A stretch of 64,000 bases of DNA from Blepharisma stoltei ATCC 30299 (lineage: Eukaryota; Protista; Ciliophora). Positions 1-39,372 of this stretch are shown one piece after another. The position numbers were made by a program, and so were the translations under genes. Under the pieces are notes generated by a model, which saw only the letters and a program-made list of their open reading frames with translations, had not been told where the DNA came from and made no database searches. How positions within the stretch are numbered: the stretch's first letter is position 1; every line of letters starts with the position of its first letter. The stretch is from positions 3,430 through 67,429 of the forward strand of contig CBFDEM010000059.1 in assembly GCA_965603825.1 (NCBI GenBank), written 5' to 3'.

Positions 1-3000
1 GATTCAAGAAATTTAAATTTAATCGATCAAAAATACTCAGTCTCTGATAATAAATATGAAAACAACTTAAAAACACGCAAGATCTCAACAATTAAGCCAC
101 CCAAAAAAAACATTCATCCTCCTGTTAAAACTCAGAATAATGAACCAGTTAATGCCTACAACTATGATATCAAGACATATATTCCTCTAAAGAAGAGCAT
201 CATAAAGCCGATAGAAATCATAGGAAGAACTATTCTAAAAGAAAATCACAAAAATACAATCAAAAAAATTTTTATAATTAAAAAGACTCCAGCAATAAGG
301 AAAAATGAACCAGAAAGAGAAGATGTAAATTGAAAGCTTATTAAGGAATCCTCGCAATCCTATAATGAAACTGCTTCCAAATCTCCAAAACTTTCTCCAT
401 CATCAGAAATAAATTCATCCACTTTGATGACAGATTTTCCTGAAATAAACGTTTCTAAAATCGAAAACCCATTCTTACATAAAAAAGAAAAGAAAGAAAA
501 ACTGATAGTTGAACCCTTGATTTCAATTTATAACACCCAAAATAAGAAAAAGTTTGAAAATCCTTTCATCAATAAAGATGAAAAAGAAATTTACAAAAAT
601 AAAAAGATACAAATACTAGAGAGCAGAATGTTCCAAGATATGATTAGACCTCTATGCACAATTCTCTTTATTGAAGCATCTGATAATCTCACAGATCCAA
701 AAAAATGATTGAAAATAACCCATTCTCCCTTAAGAAAAAATAATGTCCTACCCGTTCAAGTTGAAGAGGAAATTATAATTCCAAATCCAAGAAGATTGTG
801 CGAAAAAATAATAAGAAAAAATTTTGGATTCATCAACATTTCAGGAATTGGAAAAGACGATCTATCACGAAGACAATTAAGAAATGTTATGATCGAAAAC
901 GATATTACTATCTTAGGAATAGCAGAAACTTGATTAAAAGATAAAGTTTATATTGATGGTTTTGTGTGAATAGGTAATAATGGACCTATAGTAGGCTACA
1001 GAGGATCAGGTGGAACTGGCTTATTAATTCATAATTCACTGGCAAATGAAATAACTTGAATTGAAACTAATAACCATAGAATAACTGCAGCAAAGATAGA
1101 AGATTTTTTTGATAATATGCATATATGCACCAGTACTTGCAAACCACGAAAATGAAAAATCAATTAACGAATATAAATGAAACTTCTATATCAACTTTCA
1201 GAGGAAATAATAGACACACTATTATCGATTATATTATTTCAGAAACCCTATCAAAGATTAAATACATAGAAGTCCCACAATTAAACACCAATCACGTATT
1301 ATTACTATCTCATATAAAAAGTGTCCAGATAATACCAAAGCAAATATCCGTGATTCCATGATATAAATTAGAAGGCAAGGAATTAGAAGCGTTCCAACAC
1401 AGAATCTGAATCAATTTCCAGAATAAAGGAATCTACAAAACTCTTGATCCTTTAGCAATATTTAATAACATCAAATCAACAATTGATGAAGAATCAAAAT
1501 ACCTACTAAAACATTTAAAACCAGACCATTTTAGAACCCCAGAAATGAAAATCTTATTAAATAGAATAAATGACTCGAGGAAATGAATAAAATTTTGCTG
1601 AACGCAAAATAATAGAGAACTTGCTAACAAACTACAAAAGGTAAAAAAGGCATGAATAAATAAACTAAAAAGACTATCTAACTATGAAAAAATCAGTGAA
1701 AGCAGATTGAAAGAATGTATGCAAGATCCATATGGAGCCTGAAACAAAATAAAACGTCAGATGAATAAAAATAGAATCGCATTATCATTAAACAAAGAAG
1801 AGATTAAAGCTTGAGCAACAGAATTTGAAAATCAATTTAAAAGTAAAATAGAATTCATACCACAAAAGGGATGCTCAAAAGAAGAACTATGAGATTTCCA
1901 AGATATCCAGAAAATCATTAAAAAATTACCAAACAAAAAAGCTCCTGGACCAGACAATATAAGAAATGAGATAATAAAGAAAGGTGGAGATATAATGGCA
2001 GAAGCAATTACACATTTCCTTAATAGTTGCAAATTAAATGGAATCCCAGACAAAGCCAATGAAGCAAAAACAATCCTTATATACAAAGGAAAAGGTAATC
2101 CGAAGGAACTTAATAGCTATAGACCCATAACCTTAATGAATAATTTTATGAAGATTCTTGACAAAGCAGAACTAAAAAGAATTGAAAATACGGTTAATAT
2201 CTCAGAAAGACAACATGGATTCACAAAAGGAAAGTCATGCATGACTCAGATTTTTCTCTTAAAATCTACACTGGAATATCGTAAGTATTACAGGATTGGA
2301 AAAGGTAGAGACTCATATATATTATTTGTTGATTTCTCAAAAGCTTATGACTCAGTTAATAGAATTAGACTATTAGAGAAAATTAAAGCAAAAAATATAA
2401 AAAATGATAGCTGAAAAATAATCTCACAAATGCTAAAAGGTGAACAAACTACACTTGTCATAAATGGGATTGAAACAGAAAAAATAAACATAACAAGAGG
2501 TGTGAGACAAGGAAGTGCAATATCACCATTGTTATTTAATATATATATAGATGATATAGAAAAGGAAAATAATGACATCAATATAGAACTCCTCCCCAAT
2601 CACCAATTAAAATCAAAAATCAATTTTCAATATGCGGATGATACAGCTTTTGTAATAGAAGATTGAAAAGACATTGAAAACATTTTAAATAAACTTGATA
2701 AATGATCAAAAGATAATGATATGAACTTGAATATAGGACCGGAAAAAACAGCAATAATGCCAATCATAACAAAAAATAGGAAAAATATTATAAGTAAACT
2801 ACCTAAAATATCATACCAAAATCATGAAATACCAGTTGTTGAAAAATATAAATATTTAGGCAAAATAATGAATGGAAATATAAGAGGTACAGGATTCGAC
2901 CAAGCGCATTATAAATACCTCAAAGATAAAAGCAAAATATCTACTTGCTCTCTAATCCCTATGATTAGAAGAATGCTTAACATCCCAAGTAAAACTCTTA

Positions 3001-4080
3001 TAAACTGCTTCAAAGCAATATTCTTACCAAGATGCACATATGGTCTTGAAATATGCTCAAGAATTAAATGCAAAACTGCAATTAAACAAATTCAAAGATC
3101 ATTCAATAAGATTATAAGAGAATGTTGCCATGTTTATGACAAAACACCTATTGAACCCATATTACTTGATTTAAATATTCCAACAATACAACAATATATT
3201 GACCAAAAATCATTGATATTTTTACAAAAAATTTTTGAATTAACACATATATCTGAGATTGCAACCCATTTCCTAAGAAATTTCGATAATACAATTACAC
3301 CGACAATGAAAATCTACCAAGAGTTGCTTCAAAAATATAATTTTACAAAACCATTCGATTTTAATAACAACATGATTAGCTGAAATGACAAAAATTGAAA
3401 AGGAAATGTCAAAGATAAACTCAAAATCTATTGAAGAAACGAAAACATGAGCATAATAAATAAAAAAGTAACATTAAAGATGTTTAAAGAATTAAGGAAT
3501 CAAACTTTTACCACGAATAAACTCCCAAAATTCTGAATACTGAATAAAAACCTAATTACTGAAACAAGAATAAAGGCTGCTTGAAGATATGGTGCTGGTC
3601 CATCTAAAGTATTAGTTCTATTGAGAAACAGAAATAATCAAGATAACACTTCGAATTTATGTGAATTATGTAAAGTCAAGGAAACAGATAAACATATTCT
3701 TAACGAATGCATAAAATATAAAAACGAAAGAATCAAATTTATACAAAGATTACAAGATATGATAGGCAGATATATTAACAATACAAGCATATACAATTGA
3801 CTTATTTCAGATGTTACAGAATTAAAATTTTTAGAAGAATTAGGTGAAGAAAAATGAGAAAAGATTGACTTTTTAACAAAGATCACACTAAGAAGTATTG
3901 ATGATAAATTGCGAACTAGCAGAGAAAACAGCAAACACAAGCATTTCTTTGAAATCCAAAATATTGAAGATGACCTCAAAAAAGAAAACATATCTATTCA
4001 TGATTTAAATTTTTGAAGACTCGTTAAAAGTATAAGGCGTTTGAAATAGTACGCCAATAATTAATTTAATCCAATCCAAT
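1..4080 (+). mobile_element. Non-LTR (LINE-like) retrotransposon, cut by the window edge: N-terminal extension + APE endonuclease (damaged) + reverse transcriptase + C-terminal CCHC zinc knuckle
   Basis: With TGA=Trp, frame 1 is open from base 1 into APE motifs (GFINISG, LGIAETW, GSGGTGLL). A frameshift and deletion occur near 1105-1165. Frame 3 is then open to TAG at 4047-4049, with TFRG..IIDYI..TNH (APE end), KKAPGPDNI, YRPITL, QHGFTKGKSC, FVDFSKAYDSV, GVRQGSAISPLLFNIY, QYADD, YKYLG and CELCKVKETDKHILNEC (CX2CX7HX4C). A short AATCC repeat lies at ~4067-4080. Confidence 0.95.
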
Positions 4081-4138: not shown

Positions 4139-7100
4139 ATGAACAAAAACAAGAATTTTTCTGAAATCAGATTTATAAAGATACTATCTTTTTTAGCAAT
4201 GCTCAGATTTTTGTTCTTCATTTGAAATTATTATTGCTCAAAATGATAGGAATGAGCTCAATCAAGTTTGGATTGAAGACATAAAAAAACAGTTTGAGCC
4301 AGTCATCGAATGGTATCAATGCGATTATTCTTTAATTTCAGAGTGTGTTAACTCACATCCAAATGCCATAATCGTTCTTGATTTATCAGAAAAGTTTGAA
4401 GACACAACTAAGCCTTTCTCAATTATGCAAAGAAAATAATAAAATTCATTTGGTTCCTCAGAAAACTCATGAATCCCTTTATTACGACGAATGGACATAT
4501 AGCATCTTTCCATCAAAGTTAGCCCAAACCGATGCATATTTTGCAGTTTTAGCTTACTTTAATTGAGACTCATGGACTTGTAATCACTGATGGAGATCAT
4601 GCATACATCAAGCAGAAATTTCTAGACTATTCAGAGACTTTTGACTATATAACTATAGAATCATCGGCAAGCCTTGAAAAGGTAGTAAACAGAGTTATCA
4701 AGCCTTTAGGAGCAACATTGTATTACATTTTTGCAAATTCTGTTCTCTCATCAAAAATTCAGGAGACATTGAAATCCAGAAAGCTCCTTTCAAGGGGAGA
4801 TGGGATATTGCTAACCCAAGATAGCTGCTATGGCTGCAAAACCAATGGAGCAATCATTGTGGCTGCATGCAGGGCAAGAATATGCTAGCTCTCAAGAGCA
4901 ATTTTTAATTAGCTCTTTTGAAAATTTAATTCTGTATTTATTGAATCACACAGCAGAAACAACAGAAGAACTAAAGACATTTGCTGGAGATATACAGTGA
5001 GAAAAATCAATTCTCTATTGTAAATATTCAGGACAATCAAAGGCAAATAGTTGGATCAGTCTCTGCTGGATCAGTAGCAATCTCGAAAACCTTGATTTTC
5101 CCTGGAAATACTACTGATGTGCCCAAGTCAGATAAAAAGATTTTGCATATGACAGTTTCTGGAGGCTCTTACAACCCTGGAACTCGCTTCTTTGAGCCGC
5201 TCCTCTTTTATATTATGGCGCTTATACAGCATGAAGTTTAATTAATGAAGGTGTGCTTGGAATTTTAACACATTTTCAAATAAATTATTTTATTTTTGAT
5301 TGCGGCGTGATTACTTATGATAAAGAATATGCAACAGCCTGCTTTACCAAAGATATAGATAAATTTGGACTTGCACACATATCAGCGACCTAGCTCTTTA
5401 ATGACTATTGCAGAAATAAATCTTTTTAAAAGCTTAAATTTAACAATCCCAGTTGTTGGGTCAATCCTGATGATTATTCATTGAATTCTACGTCGCTTTA
5501 TCCTTTGTTTACAAGGGTAATTATTTCAAACCGCTATCTTTATTCGCTGACTTCGCTTTTATTTAGAGCTTTAGGATGAAGGAAAATCTGTGTTTTATAT
5601 TCAGATGATGTAACTGGGAAATCAGGATATTCAGCACTTATAAGCAATGCAGAACAATATAACATAGAAATTCTAAATTCTGAAAACTCAAGGGCTATCC
5701 CTGCAGACTCTAAATAGAACTAATATAAAAAATTACTCTGGATCATTGCAGAAAATCGTTGATACAGATGCAAGGCTTCTAGTTTTATTTTTTTTGCCAC
5801 CTCTAATATATTATGTAATCGAAGAGCTTTATGATATGGGCTTAAGAAAAGGAGATCTCTTTATTTTTGTTACAAACCAAGAAATACTTACAATGATCCA
5901 ATACGATTTTATATAGAGTATAAAATTAAAGAAACTGGAGTTCCAATGATGGCTGTTAGTGGGCGAAATTGAGTAGGTAAGGTTGGGGAATTTGCTTACT
6001 CACAGATATCATCTAGATATAATGGAGTCCCTATTTGCCTCAACTTGCTCGAGCTATGATGCGGCATATTTAATAGGGATAGCTTTAGACTACATGATAA
6101 ACCAAGGATTTGATTATACTGATCCTTACCAAATAAATTCAGCAATTAGAGCTCAAAAGTTTACTGGGTGCACAGGAGTAGTTTCTATCGACAAAAGCAG
6201 CAATGACAGAGTTATGGACATTTTTGATATAATGGCCAGCAAAATAGATACAAATTCTGGAAATGTGAACAGCATACAAAATGGGTGAATTTCGCCCATT
6301 TGGTAGTACAATGCTGAGTATTAGAACACCTCTCATTTATGGAGATGGAACTACTGTAAAGCCAGATGACCTTAGAAACCAAAATAATAAATGCCCTTTC
6401 TCCTGATAAGCTTAGTAAGAACATTTGCTAAAGGAAGAATTCTCGTTTTTTCTATCTGCTTTTTGTTTGCTTTAGTGTCTTTCGCTAGCAACAGCATATA
6501 TATGAAAAAACTGATGAAATATAACCATTGAAGAACTTAAAGTAAAGCAAGAAATTTCTCTGCAAGATATTATTGTTGAGATAACCATAGGTATTGAATT
6601 TTTCCAATTTGCGGCCATGGGACCAGATATAGCCCCAATAAATAGCATCCTAGCAAAAATTAGCAGCTCTCTTTCTCTCAATCTGGAAAATATTTTTGCA
6701 CTCCAGAAAGGGATATTTTGAATTCTAATAGATGGAGTCTTTGGGGCTATTTTATTTTGGCTCGTTTTATGCTTAGTTGTTCTACTCAGTTTAGATGAAA
6801 GATTTCCCAGAGTGACAATTTTCAGATTTTTAGCTTGGCTTGCAGACTATTTAATGCCTATTTTAGGCAATTTGTGCTTTATCCCCTTTGTTTCGATGTG
6901 CTTGAATGTATTTATGTGCGACCATTCTATTGGAGATGGCTTTACTGACAGTTTTCTTGCTGCTGACTGTTATTATTTTTGCTGGAAAGACGAGCACCTA
7001 ATATATGCCATTTTTTCTTTTATTGCCCTCTTATGCTATGAACCACTGGCTGTTCTGTGCAGGCCTTTGTGGCAAGAATTGCAGCACATGGTGCATATAC

Positions 7101-7607
7101 ATACAGCTCCTCCGTTTTTAATGGTAAAAACTGTGTTTCAAGTCATATTTATAGTCATGAATAAAACAGTCAAAAGGGCTGATCAGCACTATCCATGGAG
7201 CCCTTTTTGCTGTTCTAATGGTCGCGTACATTGGATTTATATTTAGGTATAAGCCCTATAATTATCCAAGACTGTGCTGGTGGCAAGCTTTGAGCTTAAT
7301 TGGTGTGGTTTGGCTTTCTGTAATCTCGACAATCTCGTCAAATTTTGAAGGAAACGCGTATATTTATTTTTCCATAGTGTGCGTGGGATGAATTATAATT
7401 GCTCTTATCGGAATTTATGTGCAAGGAAGAAAGTATCCCAGTCTTCTGTATAGAAAAAAAGGCTTGGATACAACTCATTTATTCAAGTTCGCATTTACTT
7501 TTGGTAAGCACTCCAAGAATGCTCTTGCAAAAATTGTCCCAGATCGTCGTCCATCATCTGTAGATTTAATGCCGAAAGACTTTTCAATTGCAAAGGAAGT
7601 TGATTAA
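4139..7607 (+). pseudogene. Double Venus-flytrap multi-pass receptor, type A; full length but with many single-base frameshifts (pseudogene or consensus errors)
   Basis: Colinear with the intact copy at 13339-16791 from MNKN to the C-terminal AKEVD-TAA. Multiple 1-nt indels (e.g. ~4205, 4865, 4975, 5705, 6270, 6400, 7185). Confidence 0.85.
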
Positions 7608-8240: not shown

Positions 8241-11200
8241 ATGAATCAAAAATCAGCAAAAAAAGAAGCAAGGCATTTCTGGCATAGGGTTTGTAAAGAT
8301 ATTATTTCTTTTATCTATGCTAAATTTAGTCTGTCTTCTAGCTGATATTCTTATTGTCCAAAGTGATAAAAATAAAGGCAGCCAAAACTGAATTAATGAA
8401 GCAAGAAGACAATTTGAGGCGGTTGTTGACTGACACTATTGCAACTATACAGCAATTTCAGAGTGCCTCGATATTTATCCTGATACTTTAATCGTTCTTG
8501 ATTTATCAGACGATTTTGAAATACAACTGAGCCTTATCTCAACTTTGTGAAGAAAACAAGAAAATCCACTTGGTTCCTCAGAAAAAGTTATGAGTCTTTA
8601 TTACTATGACGAATGGACGTATACCATCGTCTCTTCTCATTCAGCTCAAATGAATGCATACTTTGCAGTTTTAGATTGCTTTAACTGGACTCAAGGACTT
8701 GTAATTTCTGACGAAGATAACATATACAGCAAAAAAGAATTTTTTAGAATATTCAGCAACTTTTAATTATTTAGCTGTAGAGTCATCAACAAACATTGAA
8801 AGTTTAGTAAATCGGATTATCAAGCCTTTAGGCACTACTTTGTATTACATTTTTACAAATTCTGTTCTCTCGTCGACAATTCAAGAAGCTTTGAAATCTA
8901 AAAAACTTCTACTGGAAGGAGATGGATTAATTTTAAATCAAAACAGTGGTTACGATTGTATAATCGATGGAGCAATTATAATCACTATAAAAGGCCAAGA
9001 ATATGCAAACTCGGCAGAGGAATTTTTATTTAAATCAATTCAAAATTTATTGCAATATTTATTTAATAGCACGACAGAGCCAGCGACAGTTGAAGAAGCA
9101 AGATATTTAATGATGGTATATGGCCAGGAAAGCCAATTTTCTATCATTAATGTTCAGGAGGGCAAAAGAGAAATCATCGGCTCAGTCTTTGATGGAGAAG
9201 TAATAATAGTAAAAAATTTAATTTTCCCTGGAAACACTCCTAATGTGCCAAAATCAGACCAAAAAATATTACAAGTATCAATCTCTGGAGGCTCTACTAA
9301 TCCTGGCACTGCTCCAATGACATCTCTACCCCTTTTTTGCAACGGGGCATATACAGCATGGAGCTTGATAAATGACGGCACATTAGGGATTTTAAAAAAT
9401 TTTCAAATTAAATACTTCATTTCTGACTGCGGCACATTGAATTATGATGAAAAGTTTGCGAGACCTTGCTTTACCAAAGATATAGATAAAATTGGATTAG
9501 CGCATATATCAATGGGTACTGTAATAGCAACTGGAGAAATGAAGCTCTTTGAGAGCTTAAATGTAACAATTCCAGTCGTTGGGGCAGCAGCAGTAGGCCG
9601 TGCACTGAGCTCAACCGCACTTTATCCTATGTTCACAAGAATCGTCGTTCCGAACGACTACATACTTGCTTTGAGTTCGCTTTTCTTAAAAGTTCTCGGC
9701 TGAAGTAAACTCTGTGTCTTATATTCTGATGACTTATCAAGCAAGGCAACATATTCCACACTTATAGAAACTTACACGAAATATGGCTTAGAAGTTTTAA
9801 ACCCTGAAAGCTTAAGTGAGATCCCTGATAATCTAAATAGAACCACTATCAAGAATTATGCTAGCTCATTTCAAGCAATCTTAGATACACAAGCAAGGCT
9901 TTTGATTTTAATATGTATGCCTCCTGAATTATATTACATTCTTGAAGAGCTGTATGATTTAGGCCTAAGAAAAGGCGATCTCGTAGTTTTTGTTAAAAAT
10001 TCAGTACTTCTTACAATGACAGAATACGATTTTATGTATACTTATAAATTTAAAGAAACAGGAGTTCCGATGATCTCTATTTCTGGACAAAACTGGGTTG
10101 GAGAAGTTGGAAACTTTGCGTACTCAAAAATAGCATCTCTTTATAATGCAGTCCCTTATTCATATGCTTGCAATTACTATGATGCAGCTTATTATATAGC
10201 ACTTGAATTGGATTCTATGATAAATCATGGGTTTGATTATTATGATCCTTATCAGCTAAATTTGACAATGAGAGCTCGGAAATTTATCGGATGCACAGGA
10301 AAGTTTTCGATTGATAAAGACAGCAATGACAGGATTTTGGAAAATTTTGATATTAGTGTTAATAAAATAGATGCAGCTTCTGGAAATGTGACTGCTTATA
10401 AATTAGGAGAATTTCACCCATATAGCAGCATAATGCTAACTATTGATTCACCAATTATTTATGGAGATGGGTCCTCTATAAAGCCGGATGATCTAAGAAA
10501 TCAAGATAATGAATGCCCTTTTTCTAATAAGCTAGTAAGGACGTTTACAAAAGGAAGAATTCTCACTTTTGGCATTTGCTTCGGATTTGCTTTAGTCTCT
10601 TTTATTTCTACCGCATATATATGAAAAACGTGGTGAAATATCGAAATAGAAGAGCTTAAAGAAAGGCAAGAAATTTCGTTGCAAAATTTTATTGTTCAGA
10701 TAACAATAGGTATTGAATTTTTCCAGTTTGTAGCGATGGGGCCAGACATAACTCCAATCAGTACTTCTTAGCAAAAATCAGCAATTCTTTTTCCCTCAAC
10801 ATAGAAAACTTTTATAAGCTTAAAAATGGAGTATTTTGAATTGTAATTGATGGGATTTTTGGAGCTATTATTTTATGATTAATTTTGTGTGCAACTATTC
10901 TGCTCAGATTAGACGAAAAATTTCCTAGAGTGTCATTTTTCAGAATTTTAGCTTGACTTGCTGACTATTTAATGCCGATTTTAGGTAATTTATGCTTTAT
11001 TCCATTTATTTCGATGTGTTTGTGTGCGATCAATCTATTGGAGAGATTGCTATTACTTTTGCTGGAAAGGTGATCATTTAATATATGCGATTTTTTCTTT
11101 TATAGCTCTTTTATGCTATGAGCCTCTTGCAATATTTTGTAGGCCTTTGTGGCAAGAATTGCAGCATACTCTACACATACACACGTCTCCTTTATTTTTA

Positions 11201-11684
11201 ATGGTAAAAATAAAGGTCCAAATCATACTTATAGTCATGAATAAAACAGTCAAAAGAGCTGAAAGTACAGTACGCGAAGCTTTATTTGGTGTTGTAATGG
11301 CTTCCTACATTGGATTTATATTTAGATGGAAGCCTTATAATTATCCAAGATTTTGTTGATGGCAAGCATTAAGCTTAATAGGTGTATTATGACTTTCTGT
11401 GCTTTCAACAATCTCATCTAACGTTGAAGGAGGCTATTTAATTTAATTTATTTTCTGTTTCTCTGTGTAGGATGAGTTTTAATTGGTGCTATCGGTATCT
11501 ATGTACAAAGAAAAAAATATCCAAGTCTGCTGTATAGAAAAAAGGTCTGGATACAAATCATCTATTTAGATTCGCATTTACATTTGGTAAGCACTCGAAA
11601 AATGCCCTTTCAAAAATCGCCCCTCGTCGTACTTCTGAAGAACTTTCGTGCAAAGATTTTTCTATTTTGAAGCAAGATTATTAA
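8241..11684 (+). pseudogene. Double Venus-flytrap multi-pass receptor, divergent type B; frameshifts, small deletions and stops
   Basis: Homologous along its length to type A (YPMFTRIV, LGW, YYDAAY, FIGCTG, DCYYFCW). Long open blocks at 8840-10624. Short deletions near 11020-11045 and frameshifts near both ends. Stop TAA at 11682-11684. Confidence 0.85.
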
Positions 11685-11929
11685 ATAATAAAATTTATTA
11701 GAATTTAGCTTTAAGTTCTTGATTTATGTGAAAGCTATCATAACTAGTGTTATAAAGAGCATGTTTTGAATAGCTCAATATGCTTTTGCCACGAGGAATC
11801 ATGCCTATCTACTTAGCATTCATAGAGAAATTTCCTGCTCTGTTTAGCTTAAATCATCGCAAAGATCCCCAAATGCCAAGCCGGTCCAGGAGTGGAAGGC
11901 TTGGTATTATCACCATTTTATTTGTGTGA

Positions 11930-12760
11930 GATTTGCTAAGATGTTATATTTGTTATCTATGCTAAATTTGTCTTTCTTTGTTGATATTCTTATTGTCAAA
12001 AGTGATAAAAATAAAGGCAGCCAAAACTGGAAAAGAGCAATTTGAGTCAGATATAGATTGGAAATATTGCGATTAAACAGAAATTTCAGAGTCCTCAGTA
12101 TTTATCTTGATACTTTAATCGTCCTTGATTTATCAGACAATTTTGAAATACAACTGAGTCTATCTCGATAATGTGAAGAAAACAAAAAAGTCCACTTGGT
12201 TCTTCAAAAAAGGTATGAGTTTTATTGCTATGACGAATGGAATTATAGCATCATCCCTTCTGATTCAGCTCAAATAAATACATACTTTGCAGTTTTAGAC
12301 CATTTCAACTGGACTCAAGGATTGTAATTACTGACGAAGACTGAATATACAGTAAAAAAGAATTTTAGAATTTTCAGCAACTTTTGATTATTTAGCTATA
12401 GAGTCATCGACAAACATTTAAAGTTAATTAATCGAATTATCAAGCCTTTAGGTACTTCAATGTATTACATTTTGCAAATATTATTATTTTGTCAGAAATT
12501 CAAGACACTTTTGAAATCCCAAAAGCTGTTGCTGGCTGGAGAAAGTTTAATCAAAACAGCGGCTTTGGATGCAATATTGATAATTACTATAGAAGGCCAT
12601 GGATATACTAGCTCACAAGAGGGATTTTTGTTTAGCTCAACTGAAAATTTATTGCAATATTTATTCAATAGCACGACTGAGCCTGCAACTGTTGGAGAAA
12701 TAAGATAATTAATGAAGAAGACATATAATAAAAAAAATCAATTTTCTATAATAAAAATTA
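11930..12760 (+). pseudogene. 5' fragment of a type B receptor gene, degenerate
   Basis: Aligns to ~8290-9150 with stops and indels; breaks off after EPATVGEIR...QFSII. Confidence 0.85.
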
Positions 12761-13315
12761 GATTTTTTATTCATTTACAAAAATCTGAAAGTTTAATAAC
12801 ATTTTTATACCTAAGAAGACTTATGCAGCAATGAATAATACAGGAATATATAGTGTTTCAAATATCATTTAAATAACTATTTTATTGATAAATTTTAATT
12901 TTCCGCTTTAGAAGAAATCATATTAAGAAGTTCTAACATATCTTTCAGTATTGATACTAAAAACTTATTTGTCTAAGGAAAAAATATAAATAAATAAATT
13001 TTAATTATTTATGCTTTTGCTTTGGATTTTGTAGAGACATGATATTTATGCCATTCAAAAAATTTTACTTTTATAAGATATATACTTTTCTTATTTTTTT
13101 GAATTTGAGTAAATAGCCTATCTTAATGTTTAAATCTATAATATTAGTTGAATCTTAATACATCATATTCTGCGAGATATATCTCCTATAAAGTCTATGC
13201 AATGGTACTATCGCAACGTAATATATCTTATTTGCTCTTATTGGTTCTCATTAGGCGCGAATAGTTCTTAATTAATAAATTATTTAGTCGAAATTCTCAT
13301 ATTGGAAAAATAATA
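12760..13315. repeat. Conserved receptor-family spacer, copy 2 (inverted relative to 7635-8240); upstream region of the intact gene
   Basis: Reverse complement of 7635-8230 and 21415-21930. Confidence 0.85.
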
Positions 13316-13338: not shown

Positions 13339-16300
13339 ATGAACAAAAAGGCTAATTTTTCTGATATCGGACTTATAAAAATACTATCTTTTTTAAAAAT
13401 GCTCAATTTGTGTTTTTCATTCGAAATTATTATTGCTCAAAATGATAGGAATGAGCTAAATAAAATTTGGATTGAAGAAATAAAATATCAATTTGAATCA
13501 GTCATCGAATGGCATCAATGCGATTATTCTTTAATTTCAGAGTGTGTAAACTCGCATCCAAATGCCATAATAATTCTTGATTTATCGAACAGCTTTCAAA
13601 AGCAACTGAGCCTTTCTGAATTATGCAAAGAAAATAATAAAATTCATTTGGTTCCTCAGAAAAATCAAGAATTTCTTTACGACGAATGGACATATAGTAT
13701 CGTTTCATCAAACTTAGCCCAAACAGATGCATATTTTGCAGTTTTAGCTTACTTTAATTGAACTCATGGACTTGCAATCACTGATGGAGATCATGCATAC
13801 ATCAAGCAGAAATTTCTAGACTATTCACAAACTTTTGATTATATAATTATAGAATCTTCGGCAAGCCTTGAAAAGGTAGTAAACAGAGTTATCAAGCCTT
13901 TAGGAGCAACATTGTATTACATTTTTGCAAATTCTGTCCTCTCGTCAAATATTCAGGAGACGTTGAAATCCAAAAAACTCCTTTCGAGAGGAGATGGGAT
14001 ATTGCTAACCCAAAATAGCTGCTATGACTGCAAAATCAATGGAGCAATCATTGTAACTGTTGCAGGACAAGAACATGCTAGCTCTCAAGAACAACTTTTG
14101 ATTAGTTCTTTAGAAAATTTAATTCTGTATTTATTAAATCAAACAGTAGAAACAACAGAAGAACTAAAAGATTTGCTGAAGATATATAGTCAGAAAAAAC
14201 AATTTTCTATTGTAAATATTCAAGACAATCAAAGAAAAATAGTTGGATCAGTTTCTGCTGGATCAGTAACAATCTTGAAAGCCTTGATTTTCCCTGGGAA
14301 TACAACTGATGTGCCCAAGTCAGATAAAAAGATTTTGCATATGACAGTTTCTGGAGGCTCTTACAACCCTGGAGCTCCTCCTCTTACAGTAGCTCCTTTT
14401 TTATATTATGGCGCTTATACAGCATGAAGTTTAATTAATGAAGGTGCACTTGGAATTTTAGCACATTTTCAAATAAATTATTTTATTTTTGATTGTGGCG
14501 CGGTTACTTATGATAAAGAATTGACACCAGCTTGCTTTGCCAAAGATATAGATAAATTTGGACTTGCACACATACCAGCGCCTAGCTCTTTAACGACTAT
14601 TGCAGAAATTGATTTTTTTAAAAGCTTTAATTTAACCATCCCAGTTGTTGGCTCAGAATCTGATGATTATTCATTGAATTCTACATCACTTTATCCTCTG
14701 TTTACAAGGGTGATTGTTTCAAACCGCTATCTTTTATCGCTGAGTTTGCTTTTATTTAGAGCTTTAGGATGAAGAAAAATTTGTGTTTTATATTCAGATG
14801 ATATATCTGGGAAATCAGAATATTTAGCACTTATAAGTACTACAGAGCAATATAACATAGAAATTCTAAATTCTGAAAACTCAAGGGCGATCCCTGCAGA
14901 TCTAAATAGAACTAGTATAAAAAATTACTCTGGAACATTGAAGAAAATCGTTGATACAGATGCAAGACTCCTAGTTTTATTTTTTATGCCACCTCCATTA
15001 TATTATATCATCGAAGAGCTCTATGATATGGGCTTAAGAAAAGGAGATCTCCTTATTTTTGTTACAAAGGAAGGAGTATTTCCAACGAGACTATACGATG
15101 ATGTTGATAAATTAAAGATTCAGGAAATTGGAGTTCCAATGATATCTATTAGTGGACGAAATTGAGTAGGTAAGGTTGGGGAATTTGCTTATTCGCAGAT
15201 ATCATCTAGATATAATGGTCACTCATTTCCCACCACTTGCTCTAGTTATGATGCGGCATATTTAATAGGGATAGCTTTGGACTACATGATAAACCAAGGA
15301 TATGATTATACTGATCCTTACCAATTAAATTTAACAATCAGAGCTCAAAAGTTTACTGGGTGCACAGGAGTAGTTTTCATTGACAAAGGTAGCAATGACA
15401 GAGTTATGGATGCTTTTGATATAATGGCCTGCAAAATAGATACAAATTCTGGAAGTGTAATAACATACAAAATGGGAGAATTTCGTCCATTTGGCAGCAC
15501 AATGTTGAGTATCAAAACTCCTCTAATTTATGGAGACGGGACTACTGTAAAGCCAGATGATCTTAGAAACCAAATTAATAAATGCCCTTTTCATGACAAT
15601 CTAATAAGGACATTTGCTAAAGGAAGAATTATCGTTTTTTCTATATGCTTTATGTTTGCTTTAGTGTCTTTCGCTGTCACAGCTTACATATGAAAAAACT
15701 GATGAAATATAACCATTGAAGAGCTTAAAGTAAAGCAAGAAATTTCACTGCAAGATATTATTGTCATGATAACTATAGGTATTGAATTTTTCCAATTTGC
15801 GGCTATGGGACCAGATATAACCCCAATAAATAGCATCCTAGCAAAAATTAGTAGCTCTCTTTCTTTCAGTCTGGAAAATATCTTTGCTCTCCAGAAAGGG
15901 ATATTTTGAATTCTAATAGATGGAGTCTTTGGGGCTATTTTATTTTGGCTAGTTTTATGCTTAGTTGTTCTACTCAGTTTAGATGAAAAATATCCCAAAG
16001 TGACTATTTTCAGATTTTTAGCTTGGCTTGCAGACTATTTAATGCCTATCTTAGGCAATTTGTGCTTTATACCCTTTGTTTCAATGTGCTTGAATGTATT
16101 TATATGCGACCATTCTATTGGAGATAACTTTACTGACAGTTTTCTTGCTGCAGACTGTTATTATTTTTGCTGAAAAGACGAGCACTTAATATATGCAATT
16201 TTTTCTTTTATTGCCCTCTTATGCTATGAGCCACTAGCTGTTCTGTGCAGGCCTTTGTGGCAAGAGTTACAGCACATGGTGCATATACATACAGCTCCTC

Positions 16301-16791
16301 CGTTTTTAATGGTAAAGACTGTGGTTCAAATCATATTAATAGTTATGAATAAAACAGTTAAAAGGGCTGATAGCACTATCCATGGAGCCCTTTTTGCTGT
16401 TCTAATGGTCGCGTACATTTTATTTATATTTAGATATAAGCCCTATAATTATCCAAGACTATGCTGGTGGCAAACTTTGAGCTTAATTGGTGTGGTTTGG
16501 CTTTCTGTGATCTCAACAATCTCATCAAAGGTTGAAGGAAACGCGAATGTTTATTTTCCTGTAGTGTGCGTGGGATGAATAATAATTGCTCTTGTCGGAA
16601 TTTATGTGCAAAGAAGAAAATATCCCAGTCTTCTGTATAGAAAAAACTTGGATACAACTCATTTATTCAAGTTCGCATTTACTTTTGGTAAGCACTCCAA
16701 GAATGCTCTTGCAAAAATTGTCCCAGATCGTCGTCCATCATCTGTAAATTTAATGCCGAAGGACTTTTCAATTGGAAAGGAAGTTGATTAA
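13339..16791 (+). CDS. Intact ~1150-aa receptor-like protein: signal peptide, two tandem periplasmic-binding type I (ANF-receptor/Venus flytrap) modules, multi-pass (~7-8 TM) domain, short cytoplasmic tail
   Basis: All ORF pieces (13339, 13912, 14521, 14938, 15277, 16255, 16606) share one frame and are separated only by TGA; ends in TAA. Module 1: WTYSIVSSNLAQTDAYFAVLAYFNWTHGLAITD. Module 2: LYPLFTRVIVS..RALGWRKICVLYSDD, YDAAY, FTGCTGVVFID..DR. Hydrophobic segments start at ~15630. Confidence 0.88.
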
Positions 16792-16929: not shown

Positions 16930-17330
16930 ATGAAGAAGAAATTCTTCAAGCCAAGGTGTATGAATGAGGTTGGGTATGCATGCAAATTCTCTTTTCCTAA
17001 GGCTTTATTGTGCGGAGAGCATATTTAGGAGCATGCAAACTTGCCTAGTAGAGCTCATAATCTTGAATCAATTTTTATGCAGGACAAAAGATGCAATTCT
17101 TGAATTCATTACAAAAGAAAACACAAAATGTAGCGAGTTGAGAAGAAATATTATAGATCCTTTAGCCAGCGTCTTCCTAATCAAAGAAAGATTTAGGAGA
17201 TTTCAAAAGAAAGTTGGATTGCTACCCAGATGAAATAAGTGATTTCTTTGCAAAATTTCGCAAGCTTCAAAATTATTAAAGTCAGAACAAGATCCTATTT
17301 TAGGATTATTGAGTTTATCTCAACTAAATA
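16930..17330 (+). pseudogene. 5' fragment of a B-box-like/coiled-coil gene related to the Kelch gene at 51772-53388
   Basis: Translates as PRCMNEVGYACKFSFPKALLCGEHI*EHANLP..HNLESIF, then after a frameshift TKDAILEFITKE. This matches KCLRQVAFVCKCTNPETYTCEHHLKQH..HQLNPLL..GTKEAICNYISQE. Confidence 0.7.
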
Positions 17331-17890
17331 GAGAAAACAAAAAAATCCGCCTGATTCCTTAGAAAAAGTATGAGTTTTATTACTATGACGAATGGACTTA
17401 TATCATCATCATCCCTTCTTATTTAGCTCAAATGAATGCATACTTTACAGTTTTAGATTATTTCAACTTGACTCAATGACTTCTAATTAATGACCAAGAC
17501 GACATATACAGTAAATAACAATTTTTAGAATTTCAGCAACTTTGATTATTTAGCTGTAGAGTCATCGGCAAATATTGAAAAATTAGTTAATCGAATTATC
17601 AAGCTTTTAGGTACTTCAATGTATTACATTTTGCATATCTATTATTTCATGAGAAATTCAAGAAAAAACTGTTACTGGCTGGAGATGGCTTAAATTTAAA
17701 TCAAAACAGCAGCTAGGGATGCAATATTGATGGGGCTATTATTGTCACTATAAAGGCCAAGAATATTCAAGCTCGACAAAGGATTTTCTATTTAACTCAA
17801 CTTAAATTTATTGCAATATTTATTTAATAGCAGCACGGAGCCAGCGACAGTTGAAGAAATAAAATACTTAATGAAGAAAAATAACGAAAA
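17330..17890 (+). pseudogene. Internal/5' fragment of a type B receptor gene
   Basis: Aligns to ~8530-9120 with stops; ends at EPATVEEIKYLMK and abuts the 3' UTR of the minus-strand copy. Confidence 0.85.
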
Positions 17891-17929: not shown

Positions 17930-20900
17930 TTAATCAACTTCCTTTGCATAAGAAAAGTCCTTTGGCATTAAATCTACAGATGTGCGACGATCTGGGACAA
18001 TTTTTGCAAGAGCATTCTTGGAGTGCTTACCAAAAGTAAATGCGAACTTGAATAAATGAGTTGTATCCAAGTTTTTTCTATACAGAAGACTGGGATATTT
18101 TCTTCTTTGCACATAAATTCCGACAAGAGCAATTATTATTCATCCCACGCACACTACAGGAAAATAAACATACGCGTTTCCTTCAACATTTGACGAGATT
18201 GTAGAGATCACAGAAAGCCAGACCACACCAATTAAGCTCAAAGCTTGCCACAAGCACAGTCTTGGATAATTATAGGGCTTATACCTAAATATAAATCCAA
18301 CGTACATAACCATTAGAACAGAAAAAAGGGCTCCATGGATAGTGCTATCTGCCCTTTTTACTGTTTTATTCATAACTATAAATATGACTTGAACCATAGT
18401 TTTTACCATTAAAAACGGAGGAGCTGTATGTATATGCACCATGTGCTGTAACTCTTGCCACAAAGGTCTGCACAGAACAGCTAGTGGCTCATAGCATAAG
18501 AGGGCAATAAAAGAAATATCGCATATACTAGGTGCTCGTCTTTTCAACAAAAATAATAGCAGTCGGCAGCAAGAAAACTGTCAGTAAAGTTATCTCCAAT
18601 AGAATGGTCGCATATAAATACATTCAAACACATTGAAACAAAGGGTATAAAGCACAAATTGCCTAAGATAGGCATTAAATAGTCTGCAAGCCAAGCTAAA
18701 AATCTGAAAATAGTCACTTTGGGATATTTTTCATCTAAACTGAGTAGAACAACTAAACTTAAAACTAGCCAAAATAAAATAGCTCCAAAGACGCCATTTA
18801 TTAGAATTCAAAATATCCCTTTCTGTAGAGCAAAAATATTTTCCAAACTAAGAGAAAGAGAGCTGCTAATTTTTGCAAGGAAACTATTTATTGGAGCTAT
18901 ATCTGGCCCCATAGCCGCAAATTGGAAAAATTCAATACCTATGGTTATCATAACAATAATATCTTGCAGCGACATTTCTTGCTTTTCTTTCAGCTCTTCA
19001 ATAGTTATATTTCATCATTTTTTTCATATATATGCTGTGGCAGCGAAAGACACTAAAGCAAACATAAAACATATAGAAAAAACGATAATTCTTCCTTTAG
19101 CAAATCCCCTTATTAGATTTTCATGAAAAGGGCATTTATTATTTTGGTTTCTAAGGTCATCTGGCTTTACAGTAGTCCCGCCTCCATAAATGAAAGGAGT
19201 TTTGATGCTCAACATCGTGCCTCCAAATGGGCGAAATTCACCCATTTTGTATGCTACTATATTTCCAGAATTTGTATCTATTTTGGTGGCCATTATATCA
19301 AAAGTGTCCATAGCTCTGTCATTGCTGCCTTTGTCGATAGAAACTACTCCTGTGCACCCAGTAAACTTTTGAGATCTGATTGCCGAATTTATTTTGTAAG
19401 GATCAGTATAATCATATCCTTGGTTTATCATGTAGTCCAAAGCTATCCCTATTAAATATGCTGCATCATAGCCAAAGCAAGTGTGGGCAAATATAATGCT
19501 ATTATATCTAGATGCTATCTGTGAGTAAGCAAATTCCCCAACCTCGCCGACTCAACTTTTCCCAGAAATAGCCATCATTGGAACTCCAGTTTCCTTAATC
19601 TTTAATAAATCAATAGTATCGTCTGGTATTATTGGAAACATTTCTTGCTTTATAACAAAAATAACGACATCTCCTGTTCTTAAGCCCATATCATAAAGCT
19701 CTTCGATGACACAAGATAATAGAGGTGGCACAAGAAAGAAAACTAGAAGCCTTGCATCTGTATCAACGATTTCCTGCAATGTTCCAGAGTAATTTTTTAT
19801 AGTAGTTCTATTTAAATCTTCAGGGATTACCCTAGAGTTTTCAGAATTTAGAATTTCTATGCTATATTGCTCTGCAGTGCTTATAATTGCTGAATATCCT
19901 GATCTCCCATTTAGATCATCTGAATATAAAACACAGATTTTCCTTCACCCTAAAGCTCTAAATAAAAGCGAAGCCAGCGAATAAAGATAGCGGTTTGAAA
20001 TAATTACTCTTGTGAACATAGGATAAAGCGATGTAGAATTCAATGAATAATCATCAGGTATTGACCCAACAACTGGGAAAGTTAAATTTAAGCTTTTAAA
20101 AATATTTATTTCTGCAATAGTCACTAAAGAGCTAGGCGCCGATATATGTGCAAGTCCAAATTTATCTATATCTTTGGTAAAGCAAGCTGGTGTCAATTCT
20201 TTATCATAAGTAACCACGCCGCAGTCAAAAATAAAATAATTTATCCGAAAATGTGTTAAAATTCCAAGCACACCTTCATTAATTAAACTTCATGCTGTAT
20301 AAGCGCCATAATAGAAAAGAGGAGCGAATGTAACAGGAGGAGCTCCAGGATTGTAAGAGCCTCCAGAAACTGTCATATGCAAAACCTTTTTATCTGGCTT
20401 GGGCACATCAGTAGTATTTCCAGGAAAAATCAAGGTTTTCGAAATTTTTACTGATCCAGCAGAAACTGTTCCAACTATTTGCCTTTGATTGTCTTGAATA
20501 TTTACAATCGAGAATTTATTTTTCTGGCTATATATCTTCAGCAAATGCTTTAGCTCTTCTGTTGTTTCTGCTGTTTGATTCAATACATACAGAATTAAAT
20601 TTTCAAAAGAACTAATTAAAAATTCTTCTTGAGAGCTAGCATATTCTTGTCCTGCAACAGTCACAATGATTGCTCCATTAGTTTTGCAGTCATAGCAGCT
20701 ATTTTGGGTTAGCATTATCCCATCTCCTTTTGAAAGGAGTTTTTTGGATTTCAACGTCTCCTGAATTTTTGATGAGAGAACAGAATTTGTAAAAATGTAA
20801 TACAATGTTGCTCCTAAAGGCTTGATAATTCTGTTTACTACTTTTTCAAGGCTTGCCAATGATTCTATAGTTATATAATCAAAAGTTTCTGAATACTCTA

Positions 20901-21390
20901 GAAATTTCGGCTTGATGTATGCATGATCTCCATCAGTGATTACAAGTCCATGAGTTCAATTAAAATGAGCTAAAGTTGCAAAATACGCATCGGTTTGGGC
21001 TAAGTTTGATGGAAGGATGTCATATGTCCATTCGTCGTAAAGAGATTCTTGATTTTTCTGAGGAACCAAATGAACTTTATTATTTTCTTTGCATAATTGA
21101 GAAAGGCTCAGTTGCGTTTCAAAACTGTTTGATAAATCAAGAACGATTATGGCATTAGGATGTGAGTTAACACACTCTGAAATTAAAGAATAATCGCACT
21201 GATACCACTCGACGACTGATTCAAACTGATATTTTGCTTCTTCAATCCAAACTTGATTGAGCTCATTCCTATCATTTTTAGCAATAATAATTTCAACTGA
21301 AGAACATAAATTGAACATTGTTAAAAAAAATAGTTTCTTCATAAATCCGATATCAGAAAAATTTTTCGATATTTTAGCCTTTTTGTTCAT
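17930..21390 (-). CDS. Double Venus-flytrap multi-pass receptor, type A; intact except for one missing T near 18515
   Basis: ORF pieces 21390/20859/20271/19779/19440 are in one frame joined by TGA. A single 1-nt deletion in a T-run (GCG ATA TTT [T]CT) shifts to the 18550/18112 frame; possibly a sequencing error. Confidence 0.8.
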
Positions 21391-21414
21391 TTTTTAACTA
21401 AGTAAATTGTTTAA

Positions 21415-26087: not shown

Positions 26088-27017
26088 CTAAAGCATTCTT
26101 CTGTTTTCCAGCAATTTCTTTATATAAAACATTTGCCAAAAAGTAACCACAGCCACCCCAAAGCTCTCTAAAATGCTGAACCAGAACAAATTATCATTAG
26201 CACTCGCCACAGTCCTATAATGAGACTCCATTCTTAGCGTCGCGAATTGATTATCAACCTGAAAATCCTTTACTCCTTTTTGGATTTTCACTAAATATTG
26301 CTCTACAGGCTCTAAGTGCTGATTTAAAAGAATTTCTTCGGTTGAGTTCCCAGTATGCAGAGCTAGCGTCACATAATGTTTTTGCAATAAGCTGTAATTT
26401 TTGAACCTCAGGAAATACTGGCCTTTATACATAGCATCAAACCAAAAAACAGCTTCTTTCCTTTTTCTGAGCTCAATAAGGACTCTGTCCCTGGGGTCGA
26501 CAACAAAAAAGTCAATATCAGTAGTTTCTTTACTTGAGATAAACCAAGCTCCACGTACGTGTGAAGGTGAAATAGTTATATCAGCGTAAAATTCGTCTTC
26601 GCCACGTGGGACCATTTCAAAAGTGATCATTTCGTCAGGGACGAAGTCTTTCATGTGCTCTTCCCATTCTTTGGCAAGATCATATGTAGGGTCATCAGGG
26701 TTAACTTCGTGATGCTTGTAATCAGGGTCGTTTTCTCTTAATAAGTCTTCTTTGGTTATAGTATTTAAAGGAATTCCTCTAAAAGGCTCTTTAGCAGCTT
26801 CATCCTTTGGGGCAGGATTTTGAGCTGGAGGGTCTGCTGGCACAAATTTTTCATCATTAATTGGATTATTTGGGGCTTGATATATTTCTTCTTTATTTAG
26901 CGCTGAGTTTTCAAGTTCTTGCTGCTCATCAGTACTGTGTTCATGCTTTGGGATTTGCTCTTCTTGGTCTATTTGAGCAAAAGCTATGCTGATTATGATA
27001 AATAGTAAAATTTTCAT
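26088..27017 (-). CDS. p24/emp24/GOLD (TMED) family ER-Golgi cargo receptor with an acidic N-terminal extension
   Basis: Signal peptide MKILLFIIISIAFA (alternative ATG at 27041), GOLD-like DIDFFVVDP..GQYFLRFKN, coiled coil, LFWFSILES..WQMFYIKKLLENRRML tail. Confidence 0.92.
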   Translation of the reverse strand: MKILLFIIISIAFAQIDQEEQIPKHEHSTDEQQELENSALNKEEIYQAPNNPINDEKFVPADPPAQNPAPKDEAAKEPFRGIPLNTITKEDLLRENDPDYKHHEVNPDDPTYDLAKEWEEHMKDFVPDEMITFEMVPRGEDEFYADITISPSHVRGAWFISSKETTDIDFFVVDPRDRVLIELRKRKEAVFWFDAMYKGQYFLRFKNYSLLQKHYVTLALHTGNSTEEILLNQHLEPVEQYLVKIQKGVKDFQVDNQFATLRMESHYRTVASANDNLFWFSILESFGVAVVTFWQMFYIKKLLENRRML

Positions 27018-27338
27018 AATTATCTTATGTGGAATTGCCATGTACCCAATTTATTTCACATTAAAAGAAAATTCTAAGCAATATGATTGTAAATTATCAA
27101 ATAAAATTCTACTTTTCTTTAAATTTTGCGAATCTAATGTATTTTTCTATAAATAGCTCGCTGAAAATATAATTTTGAGAGAAATTTTCATGCGTTGTGT
27201 TAGTAATATATCTAGATAAAATGAGATCATAAGGCATCAAATTGAAGCTTTATCCTAATATATATTTCTTTCTGTTTAAGTAAATAAGAATTAATGATCC
27301 ATTGCATATTTTTAACACTAAAATAATTAATTTTTAAG

Positions 27339-28541: not shown

Positions 28542-29073
28542 GGAAAAAATTAGATAAATTTTAAAAATTATAAATAATTTATAGTAAGTCATCTCTCCAT
28601 ATAAGAACAGTCTCAGTTATTAAAAATACTTTTAGATACTATAGAGAAAATAGCCATGTGATATTTAAATTCAATTTAATGTGGAAATATTTTTAAGTCT
28701 AATAATTCTCTTATTTCAATTGATAATTGAGCATAGAGAATGCATATTAAATTGAGCAAAGATTTTAAGATTAAAGAATTAAGCTTCAATCCTTTAATAA
28801 TGAATTTTTCAGTACAAAAATAATAGTAGTTTAAGCATTAATAATATAATTTTAAAAAATCAACAATGAAGATCGAATTCCTTGAATTAGGCTTTGTTAT
28901 AAATTGGAGTTACACAAAAATAATATTTTGTTTTAACGATTTAAAAAAAATTTTTTATTTTATTTAGCCAATAAATCCTTGTAATTTTGAGGCATTAATA
29001 TAAGATTGATATGGATATCGATATAATAAATTTATAAACTCTTATTATAAAGTTGTTTATTTAATAACTATAA

Positions 29074-30270: not shown

Positions 30271-30370
30271 TTATTTAAGTTTATTAATTAATTTCTTTGA
30301 TATTTAAAAATTTTTATAGGGTTTATATTCCATAATTTCCTCAATTTCTACAATTATTTAAGTCTTGTAT

Positions 30371-31857: not shown

Positions 31858-32019
31858 TTGCTAAATGCTTTACTATTATTAACTTTAGTTTCTTATATAT
31901 AACTACTTTATAATTCTAATAGAATCCGCAATTTTTATGTAAGAAAAATTATTATAAAATGCTACTAGTTAAGCTAGCAAATTTATCAACTTAATAAAAA
32001 GAATTCATATTCGTTTATC

Positions 32020-39155: not shown

Positions 39156-39372
39156 GTTAAAATAGCATAGATAAATTTACTATATTTATTTCATCAATTT
39201 CTAATTTTAAGTATTAATTATTTAAAAGCTATTAATTTTATATGAAAATTTAATTCACAAGCAGCTCCAGTTCTTTAATAATAGCTATTAAGCCTTTGTA
39301 AGAGAAATATCAGCCTTATAAGAACGAACTTTTAATTGAATATGAAGCCATCTAATATACAATAATTATAGA

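Follow-up and report, generated by a model that had tools for sequence, protein, structure and literature searches.

We describe a gene at positions 13339-16791 (forward strand) of a 64,000-nucleotide stretch of Blepharisma stoltei ATCC 30299 (assembly GCA_965603825.1, contig CBFDEM010000059.1, positions 3,430 to 67,429; hereafter the window). Its predicted product carries two tandem Venus flytrap (VFT) modules, both assigned to the type I periplasmic binding protein (PBP) superfamily, followed by nine transmembrane (TM) helices and a short tail. The VFT superfamily itself is known; new here is a putative VFT receptor in which two type I modules stand in tandem and the output domain, with its nine helices, is unclassified. 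With moderate confidence, we favor the view that the gene encodes a cell-surface sensor belonging to a large ciliate family. The literature searched yielded no paper describing a double-VFT, nine-helix family, and likewise no prior description of this architecture with a known non-receptor function, the finding that would have spoken against the receptor proposal of a preliminary description of this DNA.

Gene structure and domain layout

Standard stop codons split 13339-16791 into nine pieces, each break being a TGA, and frame analysis finds the frame from 13339 open as far as a TAA provided that TGA is read as tryptophan. These TGA codons coincide with tryptophans that are conserved in homologues, including those of Stentor, which uses the standard genetic code: they lie in the motifs CW..H (amino acid (aa) 945), GW (aa 478) and IWK.WW (aa 785-789), and thus include the nearly invariant W of DC...CW...H and the W of the GW motif. 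Because the frame is uninterrupted and its TGA codons stand at conserved tryptophan positions, we consider this an intact, intron-free gene of a ciliate in which TGA encodes tryptophan. The gene covers the full length of all three domain hidden Markov models (HMMs) used in this work, those of the N-terminal module (N-module), the second module and the membrane domain. It entered the searches as stop-free pieces, and translations with TGA read as tryptophan were used in scripts only. The layout of the gene is as follows.

13339-16791 (+): intact gene, 1150 codons, 10 in-frame TGA codons read as tryptophan, TAA stop at 16789-16791
13339-13425 (+): predicted signal peptide (N-terminal hydrophobic segment), aa 1 to ~29; Kyte-Doolittle peak at aa 10-33
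13426-14382 (+): VFT module 1 (VFT1), aa ~30-348, shortened and diverged; first motif copy at aa 117; the N-module HMM matches 13501-14382
14398-15570 (+): VFT module 2 (VFT2), aa ~354-744, full-size ANF_receptor module; second motif copy at aa 452
15586-16632 (+): nine-helix membrane domain, aa ~750-1098, delimited by hydropathy and an AlphaFold2 model of the paralogue P0188
16105-16182 (+): Cys-rich TM4-TM5 loop, aa 923-948, C..DC...CW...H
16633-16788 (+): short, predicted cytosolic tail of about 52-55 residues with no enzyme domain

The assignment of the N-terminal hydrophobic segment as a signal peptide is suggested by hydropathy, and the tail piece had no Pfam match. All of the sequence strings quoted in the preliminary description were located in the product: the two copies of its repeated motif begin with WTYSIV at aa 117 and with YPLFTRV at aa 452, while VFICDH and DCYYFCW lie at aa 920 and aa 939.

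Both ectodomain modules belong to the type I PBP superfamily

The second module clearly belongs, by sequence comparison, to the type I PBP/ANF_receptor (VFT) superfamily. In the window gene, Pfam ANF_receptor matched two consecutive stop-free pieces in collinear order, over profile positions 121-208 (E 3.5e-4) and 265-349 (E 2.3e-3); these pieces scored 20.2 and 17.5 bits against PF01094, each by itself being under the 25.4-bit cut-off. Full-length relatives gave far stronger matches. ANF_receptor was matched in 41 of 42 (best E 8e-56), 17 of the 42 also matched Peripla_BP_6, the LivJ-type binding-protein family, and the paralogue P0005 aligned with profile positions 7-340 in one stretch, aa 363-689, at 76 bits. 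A profile of 70 second modules was compared with the sequences of the Protein Data Bank (PDB) and matched the amino-terminal domain (ATD) of AtGLR3.4 (E 1.4e-25), GABA-B2 (E 7e-23) and CaSR (E 2e-22), the matches within the superfamily extending to the VFTs of T1R and mGluR over an overall range of E 1e-25 to 1e-19. In single-sequence searches, the best PDB match of VFT2 was NPR-C (E 7e-4), a 332-aa piece of a paralogue found nothing in the PDB, and a single window piece gave only a weak C-terminal match to the VFT2 profile (E 1.3e-3, probability 19%).

A direct BLASTP comparison of module 1 with module 2 of the intact gene was not significant (E 0.5), so that profiles were needed to detect the relationship. 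When N-modules were aligned with second modules using hhalign, 282 collinear columns were matched with a probability of 98.4% (E 7.8e-15), and a repeat with independent alignments gave 97.9% (E 3.3e-13); the controls, a reversed target and the membrane domain, gave E 0.59 and E 0.67, respectively. Both runs placed the two motif copies (aa 117 and aa 452) opposite each other, and since the copies align in a profile-profile comparison, the repeat of the motif reflects homology and not chance. The N-module profile also matched the GluN1 ATD among PDB sequences (E 2e-15), the VFT2 HMM recognized the Stentor N-module (E 3e-7), and the N-modules of 37 of 90 relatives reached Pfam ANF_receptor by themselves (best E 1.5e-14), while that of the window subfamily was below Pfam detection.

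An AlphaFold2 model of residues 30-358 of P0217, the product of another copy in the window (copy 6, listed below) whose N-module is 84% identical to that of the intact gene, had a mean predicted local distance difference test score (pLDDT) of 92.2 and a predicted template modelling score (pTM) of 0.88, with alternating strands and helices. Foldseek returned at least 500 PDB matches for this model, with GluN1 ATDs on top (E 9e-16, template modelling score (TM-score) ~0.6). N-modules have full size, ~385 aa, in Stentor and several environmental relatives and are ~320 aa long in Blepharisma. On this evidence from profiles and a model, VFT1 is a shortened, diverged internal duplicate of VFT2 with a predicted type I PBP fold. 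The earlier proposals that the protein has two tandem type I VFT modules, and that its N-terminal ~350 residues model as a type I PBP fold, are therefore borne out, as four independent lines, profile comparison, GluN1 ATD matches, Pfam searches on relatives and the model, agree.

A nine-helix membrane domain without detectable relatives

Hydropathy analysis shows about nine hydrophobic segments between aa 764 and aa 1089. An AlphaFold2 model of the membrane domain of P0188, a B. stoltei paralogue 64% identical to the intact gene overall, has nine long membrane helices, one further helix after TM9 and then a low-confidence tail (pLDDT 90.3, pTM 0.86). The 7-8 hydrophobic segments described before should thus be replaced by nine helices. 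With the ectodomain outside the cell, this topology would place the tail in the cytosol and turn the Cys-rich TM4-TM5 loop outward. Invariant residues comprise C923, C940 and C944 in the TM4-TM5 loop, H949 at the start of TM5, an Asp at the inner end of TM2, and C749, the one invariant Cys of the linker between VFT2 and TM1, which is only ~10-15 residues long. Nearly invariant are a Q in TM2, a K and a Q in TM6, an H in TM7 and the inner-face motifs RPLWQ (RPLWQE) and NY.R (KPYNY.R).

None of the comparisons with Pfam families or solved structures gave a consistent relative. Pfam searches with 90 membrane domains at E <= 1 produced scattered noise, the most recurrent family being S_4TM (5 of 90); 7tm_3 was not among the 25 families listed of 43, and PF06011 'TRP' was touched by a single domain at E 0.1. 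Searches of the 42 full-length relatives at E <= 0.01 found only ANF_receptor, Peripla_BP_6 and one stray family. The membrane-domain profile matched nothing among PDB sequences at E <= 10, a word-based search with this profile at E <= 1, over a length window of 306-975 aa, recovered only family members, and an hhalign comparison of the two halves of the domain detected no internal repeat (probability 1.8%). When the model was compared with the PDB by Foldseek, no match reached E <= 0.001 and TM-scores stayed below 0.2, with no GPCR (G protein-coupled receptor), ionotropic glutamate receptor (iGluR) or TRP channel among the matches, despite the many solved structures of these proteins. The class C GPCR fold was therefore not recovered, and the description of the domain as a non-canonical multi-pass domain holds for Pfam, PDB sequences and PDB folds alike.

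The only significant fold match came from predicted viral structures (BFVD), where an uncharacterised 284-aa Megaviridae protein aligned with E 1.2e-4 and a target TM-score of 0.68. The second match comes from the sample that contains the first and bears the annotation 'Transient receptor potential ion channel' (E 0.2, probability 0.77). Three proteins of this one 'Megaviridae environmental sample', A0A5J6VI06, A0A5J6VHI1 and A0A5J6VLW6, occupy ranks 1, 2 and 17 of the fold matches. With the Stentor membrane domain as query, no relative was found among viral contigs. The fold matches suggest that a giant virus may carry stand-alone relatives of the nine-helix domain. As judged from sequences and models, the domain is a conserved bundle without a detectable relative among Pfam families or solved structures, and it may represent a new family or a new membrane-protein fold.

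Family size and hosts

To learn about the distribution of the family, a 186-aa stop-free membrane piece of copy 8 (listed below) was used as phmmer query against 1.84 billion cluster representatives (50% identity). This search yielded at least 419 proteins at E <= 1e-3, 276 of them at E <= 1e-10. Most were 1050-1250 aa long with the matched region near aa 850, and among the best 150 relatives all shorter ones were truncations of the identical architecture. With a 221-aa N-module piece as query, a word-based search, limited by its length filter, gave a single short B. stoltei match. The closest database proteins are from Blepharisma stoltei, for which a word-based search with the P0005 membrane domain found at least 61 clusters at 90% identity; many of these genes share contigs, and the family is therefore clustered in this genome. 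Named hosts are limited to two heterotrich ciliates, B. stoltei and Stentor coeruleus, and the remaining relatives are MMETSP transcripts and metagenome or Logan contigs. One metagenome contig, clearly eukaryotic, carries a single family member amid housekeeping genes. The databases hold automatic names only, such as 'Receptor ligand binding region domain-containing protein' or, from the Joint Genome Institute (JGI), 'ABC-type branched-chain amino acid transport system substrate-binding protein'. The strong expansion noticed at the outset is thus confirmed, while restriction to one lineage is not proven because most relatives come from metagenome or transcriptome contigs without a species name.

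Gene copies, turnover and selection in the window

A census by tblastn (with TGA read as tryptophan), nucleotide alignment and a six-frame scan with the three domain HMMs detected six near-full copies, of which 13339-16791 is the only intact one, and three relics of the N-module. The count of six near-full copies made earlier stands, with five of the six disrupted; the five or more fragments reported with it come down to three separate ones, all of them N-module relics. Identities are given relative to the intact gene at the nucleotide (nt) level unless noted otherwise.

4139-7604 (+): copy 1, 91.7% identity; ~20 small, mostly 1-nt, frame-breaking insertions or deletions (indels)
8263-11675 (+): copy 2, diverged subfamily, 73% nt and 55% aa identity; many indels
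11914-12762 (+): N-module relic with stops and frameshifts
17237-17824 (+): N-module relic with stops and frameshifts
17930-21393 (-): copy 6, 91% identity; one 1-nt deletion at codon 954
53779-57101 (-): copy 7, 91.5% identity; 157-nt deletion of codons 910-962
57150-60608 (+): copy 8, 85% identity, without the first 255 nt; three frame-breaking deletions and a 283-nt insertion at codon 833
60731-61207 (+): N-module relic with stops and frameshifts
62760-63530 (unstranded): telomere repeat, 96 units of TTAGGGTG (equivalent to CCCTAACA)

The product of copy 6, P0217, has 969 aa; it retains TM4 and the Cys-rich loop and breaks off as TM5 begins, while the deletion in copy 7 removes the end of TM4, the Cys-rich loop and the start of TM5. 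The insertion in copy 8 (59386-59658), 283 nt in length, is AT-rich and occurs once in the window. Introns were considered as the source of the frame changes and rejected, the differences from the intact gene being 1-4-nt indels, the 157-nt deletion and the 283-nt insertion. The telomere repeat identifies the array as subtelomeric, with receptor copies and relics lying ~2-59 kb from it.

Behind three of the full copies lies a decayed relic, in each case of an N-module only. Between two of these relics identity is 79%, and both are ~80% identical to the N-terminus of copy 2; this similarity and the placement of the relics suggest duplication of a unit made up of a gene and an older relic.

Pairwise ratios of nonsynonymous to synonymous substitution rates (dN/dS) relative to the intact gene, calculated by the Nei-Gojobori method and non-independent since all comparisons share this one sequence, were 0.22-0.40 overall. 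By region they were 0.13-0.23 for the membrane domain and 0.46-1.16 for residues 479-608 of VFT2, so that the membrane domain is the most constrained part of the protein and part of VFT2 the least. The overall values imply that the broken copies were coding genes during most of their evolution. Their damage reflects either recent disruption in all five copies or, for some of the indels, assembly errors. Copy 1 has ~17 single-base insertions relative to the intact gene and yet a dN/dS of 0.34; its excess of such insertions may stem from local assembly or polishing errors rather than mark a pseudogene.

Comparison with known VFT and nine-helix proteins

Our protein resembles the class C GPCRs (mGluR, CaSR, GABA-B and T1R) in that an ANF_receptor VFT is set on a multi-pass domain, with VFT2 profile matches of E 1e-23 to 1e-19, and probably also in that closure of the cleft would be relayed to the membrane domain. 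It differs from them in having two tandem VFTs instead of one and nine helices that match no 7tm_3 domain or GPCR structure. The domain 7tm_3 (PF00003) was neither among the Pfam families listed nor recovered by Foldseek searches of the PDB with the nine-helix model, and the cysteine-rich NCD3G linker domain had no Pfam match, the corresponding linker being the short one described above.

The iGluRs, such as the NMDA receptor subunit GluN1 and plant GLR3.4, likewise stack two binding-protein-like modules, of which the outer one is a type I PBP ATD, and their ATDs are the closest solved relatives of both modules, that of GluN1 for VFT1 and that of AtGLR3.4 for VFT2. The second module of an iGluR, in contrast, is a type II PBP split by the pore, whereas here both modules are of type I and contiguous and precede the nine helices. 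No Pfam match to the Lig_chan pore and no match to an iGluR membrane fold were obtained. Natriuretic-peptide receptors and receptor guanylyl cyclases share the ANF_receptor ectodomain, as the NPR-C match indicates, but possess one VFT and a single helix, followed in the cyclases by kinase-homology and cyclase domains; our protein has nine helices and a domain-free tail of ~55 residues in place of the single helix and these two domains. It thus lacks the defining features of class C GPCRs, iGluRs and receptor guanylyl cyclases, while both of its modules belong to the VFT superfamily. In principle, by analogy, it would resemble a class C GPCR or an iGluR, a flytrap being coupled to a membrane domain.

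Tandem binding-protein domains fused to a membrane domain are also found in transporters of the bacterial GlnPQ type, in which two such domains are fused to the translocator. Unlike the modules described here, the GlnPQ domains are of type II and feed an ATP-binding cassette (ABC) translocator with ATPase subunits. Pfam searches of the protein itself, as distinct from subunits encoded elsewhere, found no ABC ATPase and no DctQM-type permease domain of tripartite ATP-independent periplasmic (TRAP) transporters. A matching gross topology is seen in the fungal Pkd2/Flc family, Pfam PF06011, to which we take Schizosaccharomyces pombe Pkd2 to belong. Its members share the N-out/C-in arrangement, in which a ligand-binding domain outside the cell is followed by nine TM helices and a tail in the cytosol, but their ectodomain is Ig/ML-like and lipid-binding, not a VFT.

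Proposed function and alternative explanations

A receptor, and more specifically chemoreceptor, role is suggested by the architecture, by the expansion and turnover of the family and by a membrane domain that changes more slowly than VFT2; we counted in its favor the uniform architecture, the expansion and clustering of the genes and their birth-and-death turnover. In the mechanism that we propose, a small solute, possibly amino-acid-like, would bind in the cleft of the membrane-proximal VFT2 and cause its closure. VFT2 is the likely ligand site because it is full-sized, adjoins the membrane and evolves fastest in residues 479-608. The diverged VFT1 may serve assembly or modulation, since it is closest to the GluN1 ATD, which is not an agonist-binding domain. 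Closure would be relayed through the short linker between VFT2 and TM1, whose Cys could form, with the three Cys of the TM4-TM5 loop, two disulfides that tie linker and loop together, and the nine-helix domain would convert it into a cellular signal. Our preferred guess for the output is an ion-conducting or ion-gating unit, in view of the conserved polar residues in the helices, the electrical nature of ciliate chemoresponses and the Pkd2/Flc lead; nearly as probable would be a conserved cytosolic partner engaged through the inner-face motifs RPLWQE and KPYNY.R.

Several points weigh against this proposal. The case for a sensor is built from sequence comparison and models, and the models are of paralogues, P0217 from the window (copy 6) and P0188 from elsewhere in B. 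stoltei, and not of the product of the intact gene; as each was modelled domain by domain, the coupling of VFT to membrane domain and the pairing of the disulfides lie outside them. The Foldseek comparison of the membrane model with the PDB gave no channel, GPCR or transporter match (best E 0.12, TM-score 0.19), and the regional dN/dS contrast draws on non-independent comparisons. In the amino-acid-binding signature of lobe 1, one of two checked positions is well kept: that aligned with what we take to be CaSR Ser147 is Ser or Thr in 71% of members, while that aligned with the presumed Ser170 is poorly kept and is Asp in the window subfamily. An amino-acid-like ligand of VFT2 is accordingly possible from its sequence, though not strongly indicated.

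The same domains could serve uptake, with the VFTs capturing nutrients such as amino acids and the nine-helix domain acting as the permease of a solute-binding-domain-fused transporter or 'transceptor'; bacterial GlnPQ operates in this manner. The Peripla_BP_6 matches of 17 of 42 members and the JGI name agree with this, as do the top PDB matches of Foldseek, which are secondary transporters, none of them significant. We nevertheless judge it unlikely, as no PDB match reached the threshold, no nucleotide-binding or other transporter domain was found by Pfam within the protein, the internal repeat common in secondary transporters was not detected, and more than 60 paralogues that rapidly turn into pseudogenes resemble a receptor repertoire more than a transporter set. 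A ligand-gated cation channel, namely a VFT-gated member of the fungal 'TRP-like' Pkd2/Flc family, would be a specific version of the channel output favored above; the nine-helix domain would then be a remote homologue of these putative Ca2+-permeable channels. S. pombe Pkd2 has an extracellular domain, nine TM helices and a cytosolic tail (10.1101/2022.08.11.503631), matching our topology, and Pkd2 is reported elsewhere to be Ca2+-permeable and stretch-activated (PMC9727806). The best BFVD match and the TRP-annotated second one point the same way, as does the one domain of 90 that touches PF06011. The Pfam signal is at noise level, though, the word-based search with the membrane profile gave family members only, and the origin of the viral protein's name in PF06011 is an assumption. 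The link to Pkd2/Flc is therefore only a lead, and we regard membership in this family as possible but rather doubtful.

The genomic setting brings to mind a variable surface coat or adhesion protein, the array then serving to vary the surface or to let cells recognize one another rather than to sense solutes. A subtelomeric array with many pseudogenes and relics, and an ectodomain that evolves faster than the membrane part, would suit such a protein. A coat would have no need of a nine-helix domain that is under strong purifying selection and whose polar residues and cytosolic motifs are invariant, a lone member lies amid housekeeping genes on a metagenome contig, and both ectodomain modules retain the ligand-binding clamshell fold; we thus think this explanation very unlikely. 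As for a specific ligand, the superfamily binds amino acids, including L-Trp in the case of CaSR, which makes gamone 2 (blepharismone) a conceivable one. That this gene or a close paralogue is the gamone 2 receptor nonetheless has the smallest probability of the alternatives and would be a real surprise, because at least 61 paralogues leave a low prior for any one gene and the family is also present in Stentor, which is not known to use blepharismone. In favor of the idea, the gamone receptors of Blepharisma were still called 'putative' in 2024 (PMC10892320).

Chromosome-end setting and neighboring genes

Past the telomere repeat, 58 units of another 8-mer, TTATAACT, extend to the end of the window (64000). 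Sequence beyond a telomere is unexpected; it might stem from an assembly artefact or from a fused or captured end, or else represent a satellite. At the other side of the array, directly upstream, an open frame of 977 codons has the appearance of a retrotransposon-like element, lying in a contig that is somatic and bears a telomere. The two receptor clusters are separated by ordinary eukaryotic genes, which encode a p24/GOLD cargo receptor (E 4e-26), a WD40 protein and a Kelch-repeat protein, and by further tandem frames. Four of these have similar N- and C-termini, three of them being of ~400 codons and one shorter, and look like a second local gene family. Two tandem paralogous pairs follow, and the pieces 42852-44087 and 45782-46813 of the second pair had no Pfam match.

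1116-4049 (+): open frame of 977 codons (TGA read as tryptophan), RVT_1 match (E 8e-13) on the piece 1995-2414
26088-27041 (-), 47132-50248 (+) and 51772-53463 (-): ordinary eukaryotic genes
27327-34083 (+): four tandem frames, 27327-28541, 29074-30270, 31354-31857 and 32839-34083
39322-47131 (+): two tandem paralogous pairs, 39322-40722 with 41114-42544 and 42852-44747 with 45209-47131

Implications

Receptors for food, repellents and mating pheromones in ciliates are largely unidentified, and the family described here supplies candidates: hundreds of proteins, each with two clamshells of the kind that animals use for sensing glutamate, GABA, calcium and amino acids, and taste. In its most far-reaching form, which we consider unlikely as a whole, the proposal would be that the nine-helix domain is a new ligand-gated ion-channel module, possibly a remote relative of Pkd2/Flc, that the family is the chemoreceptor repertoire of heterotrichs, in which binding of a nutrient or pheromone leads directly to changes in membrane potential, and that one member is the gamone 2 receptor. 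If the membrane domain does signal, the family would represent a new way of coupling a VFT to a membrane domain, a third independent solution beside those of class C GPCRs and iGluRs.

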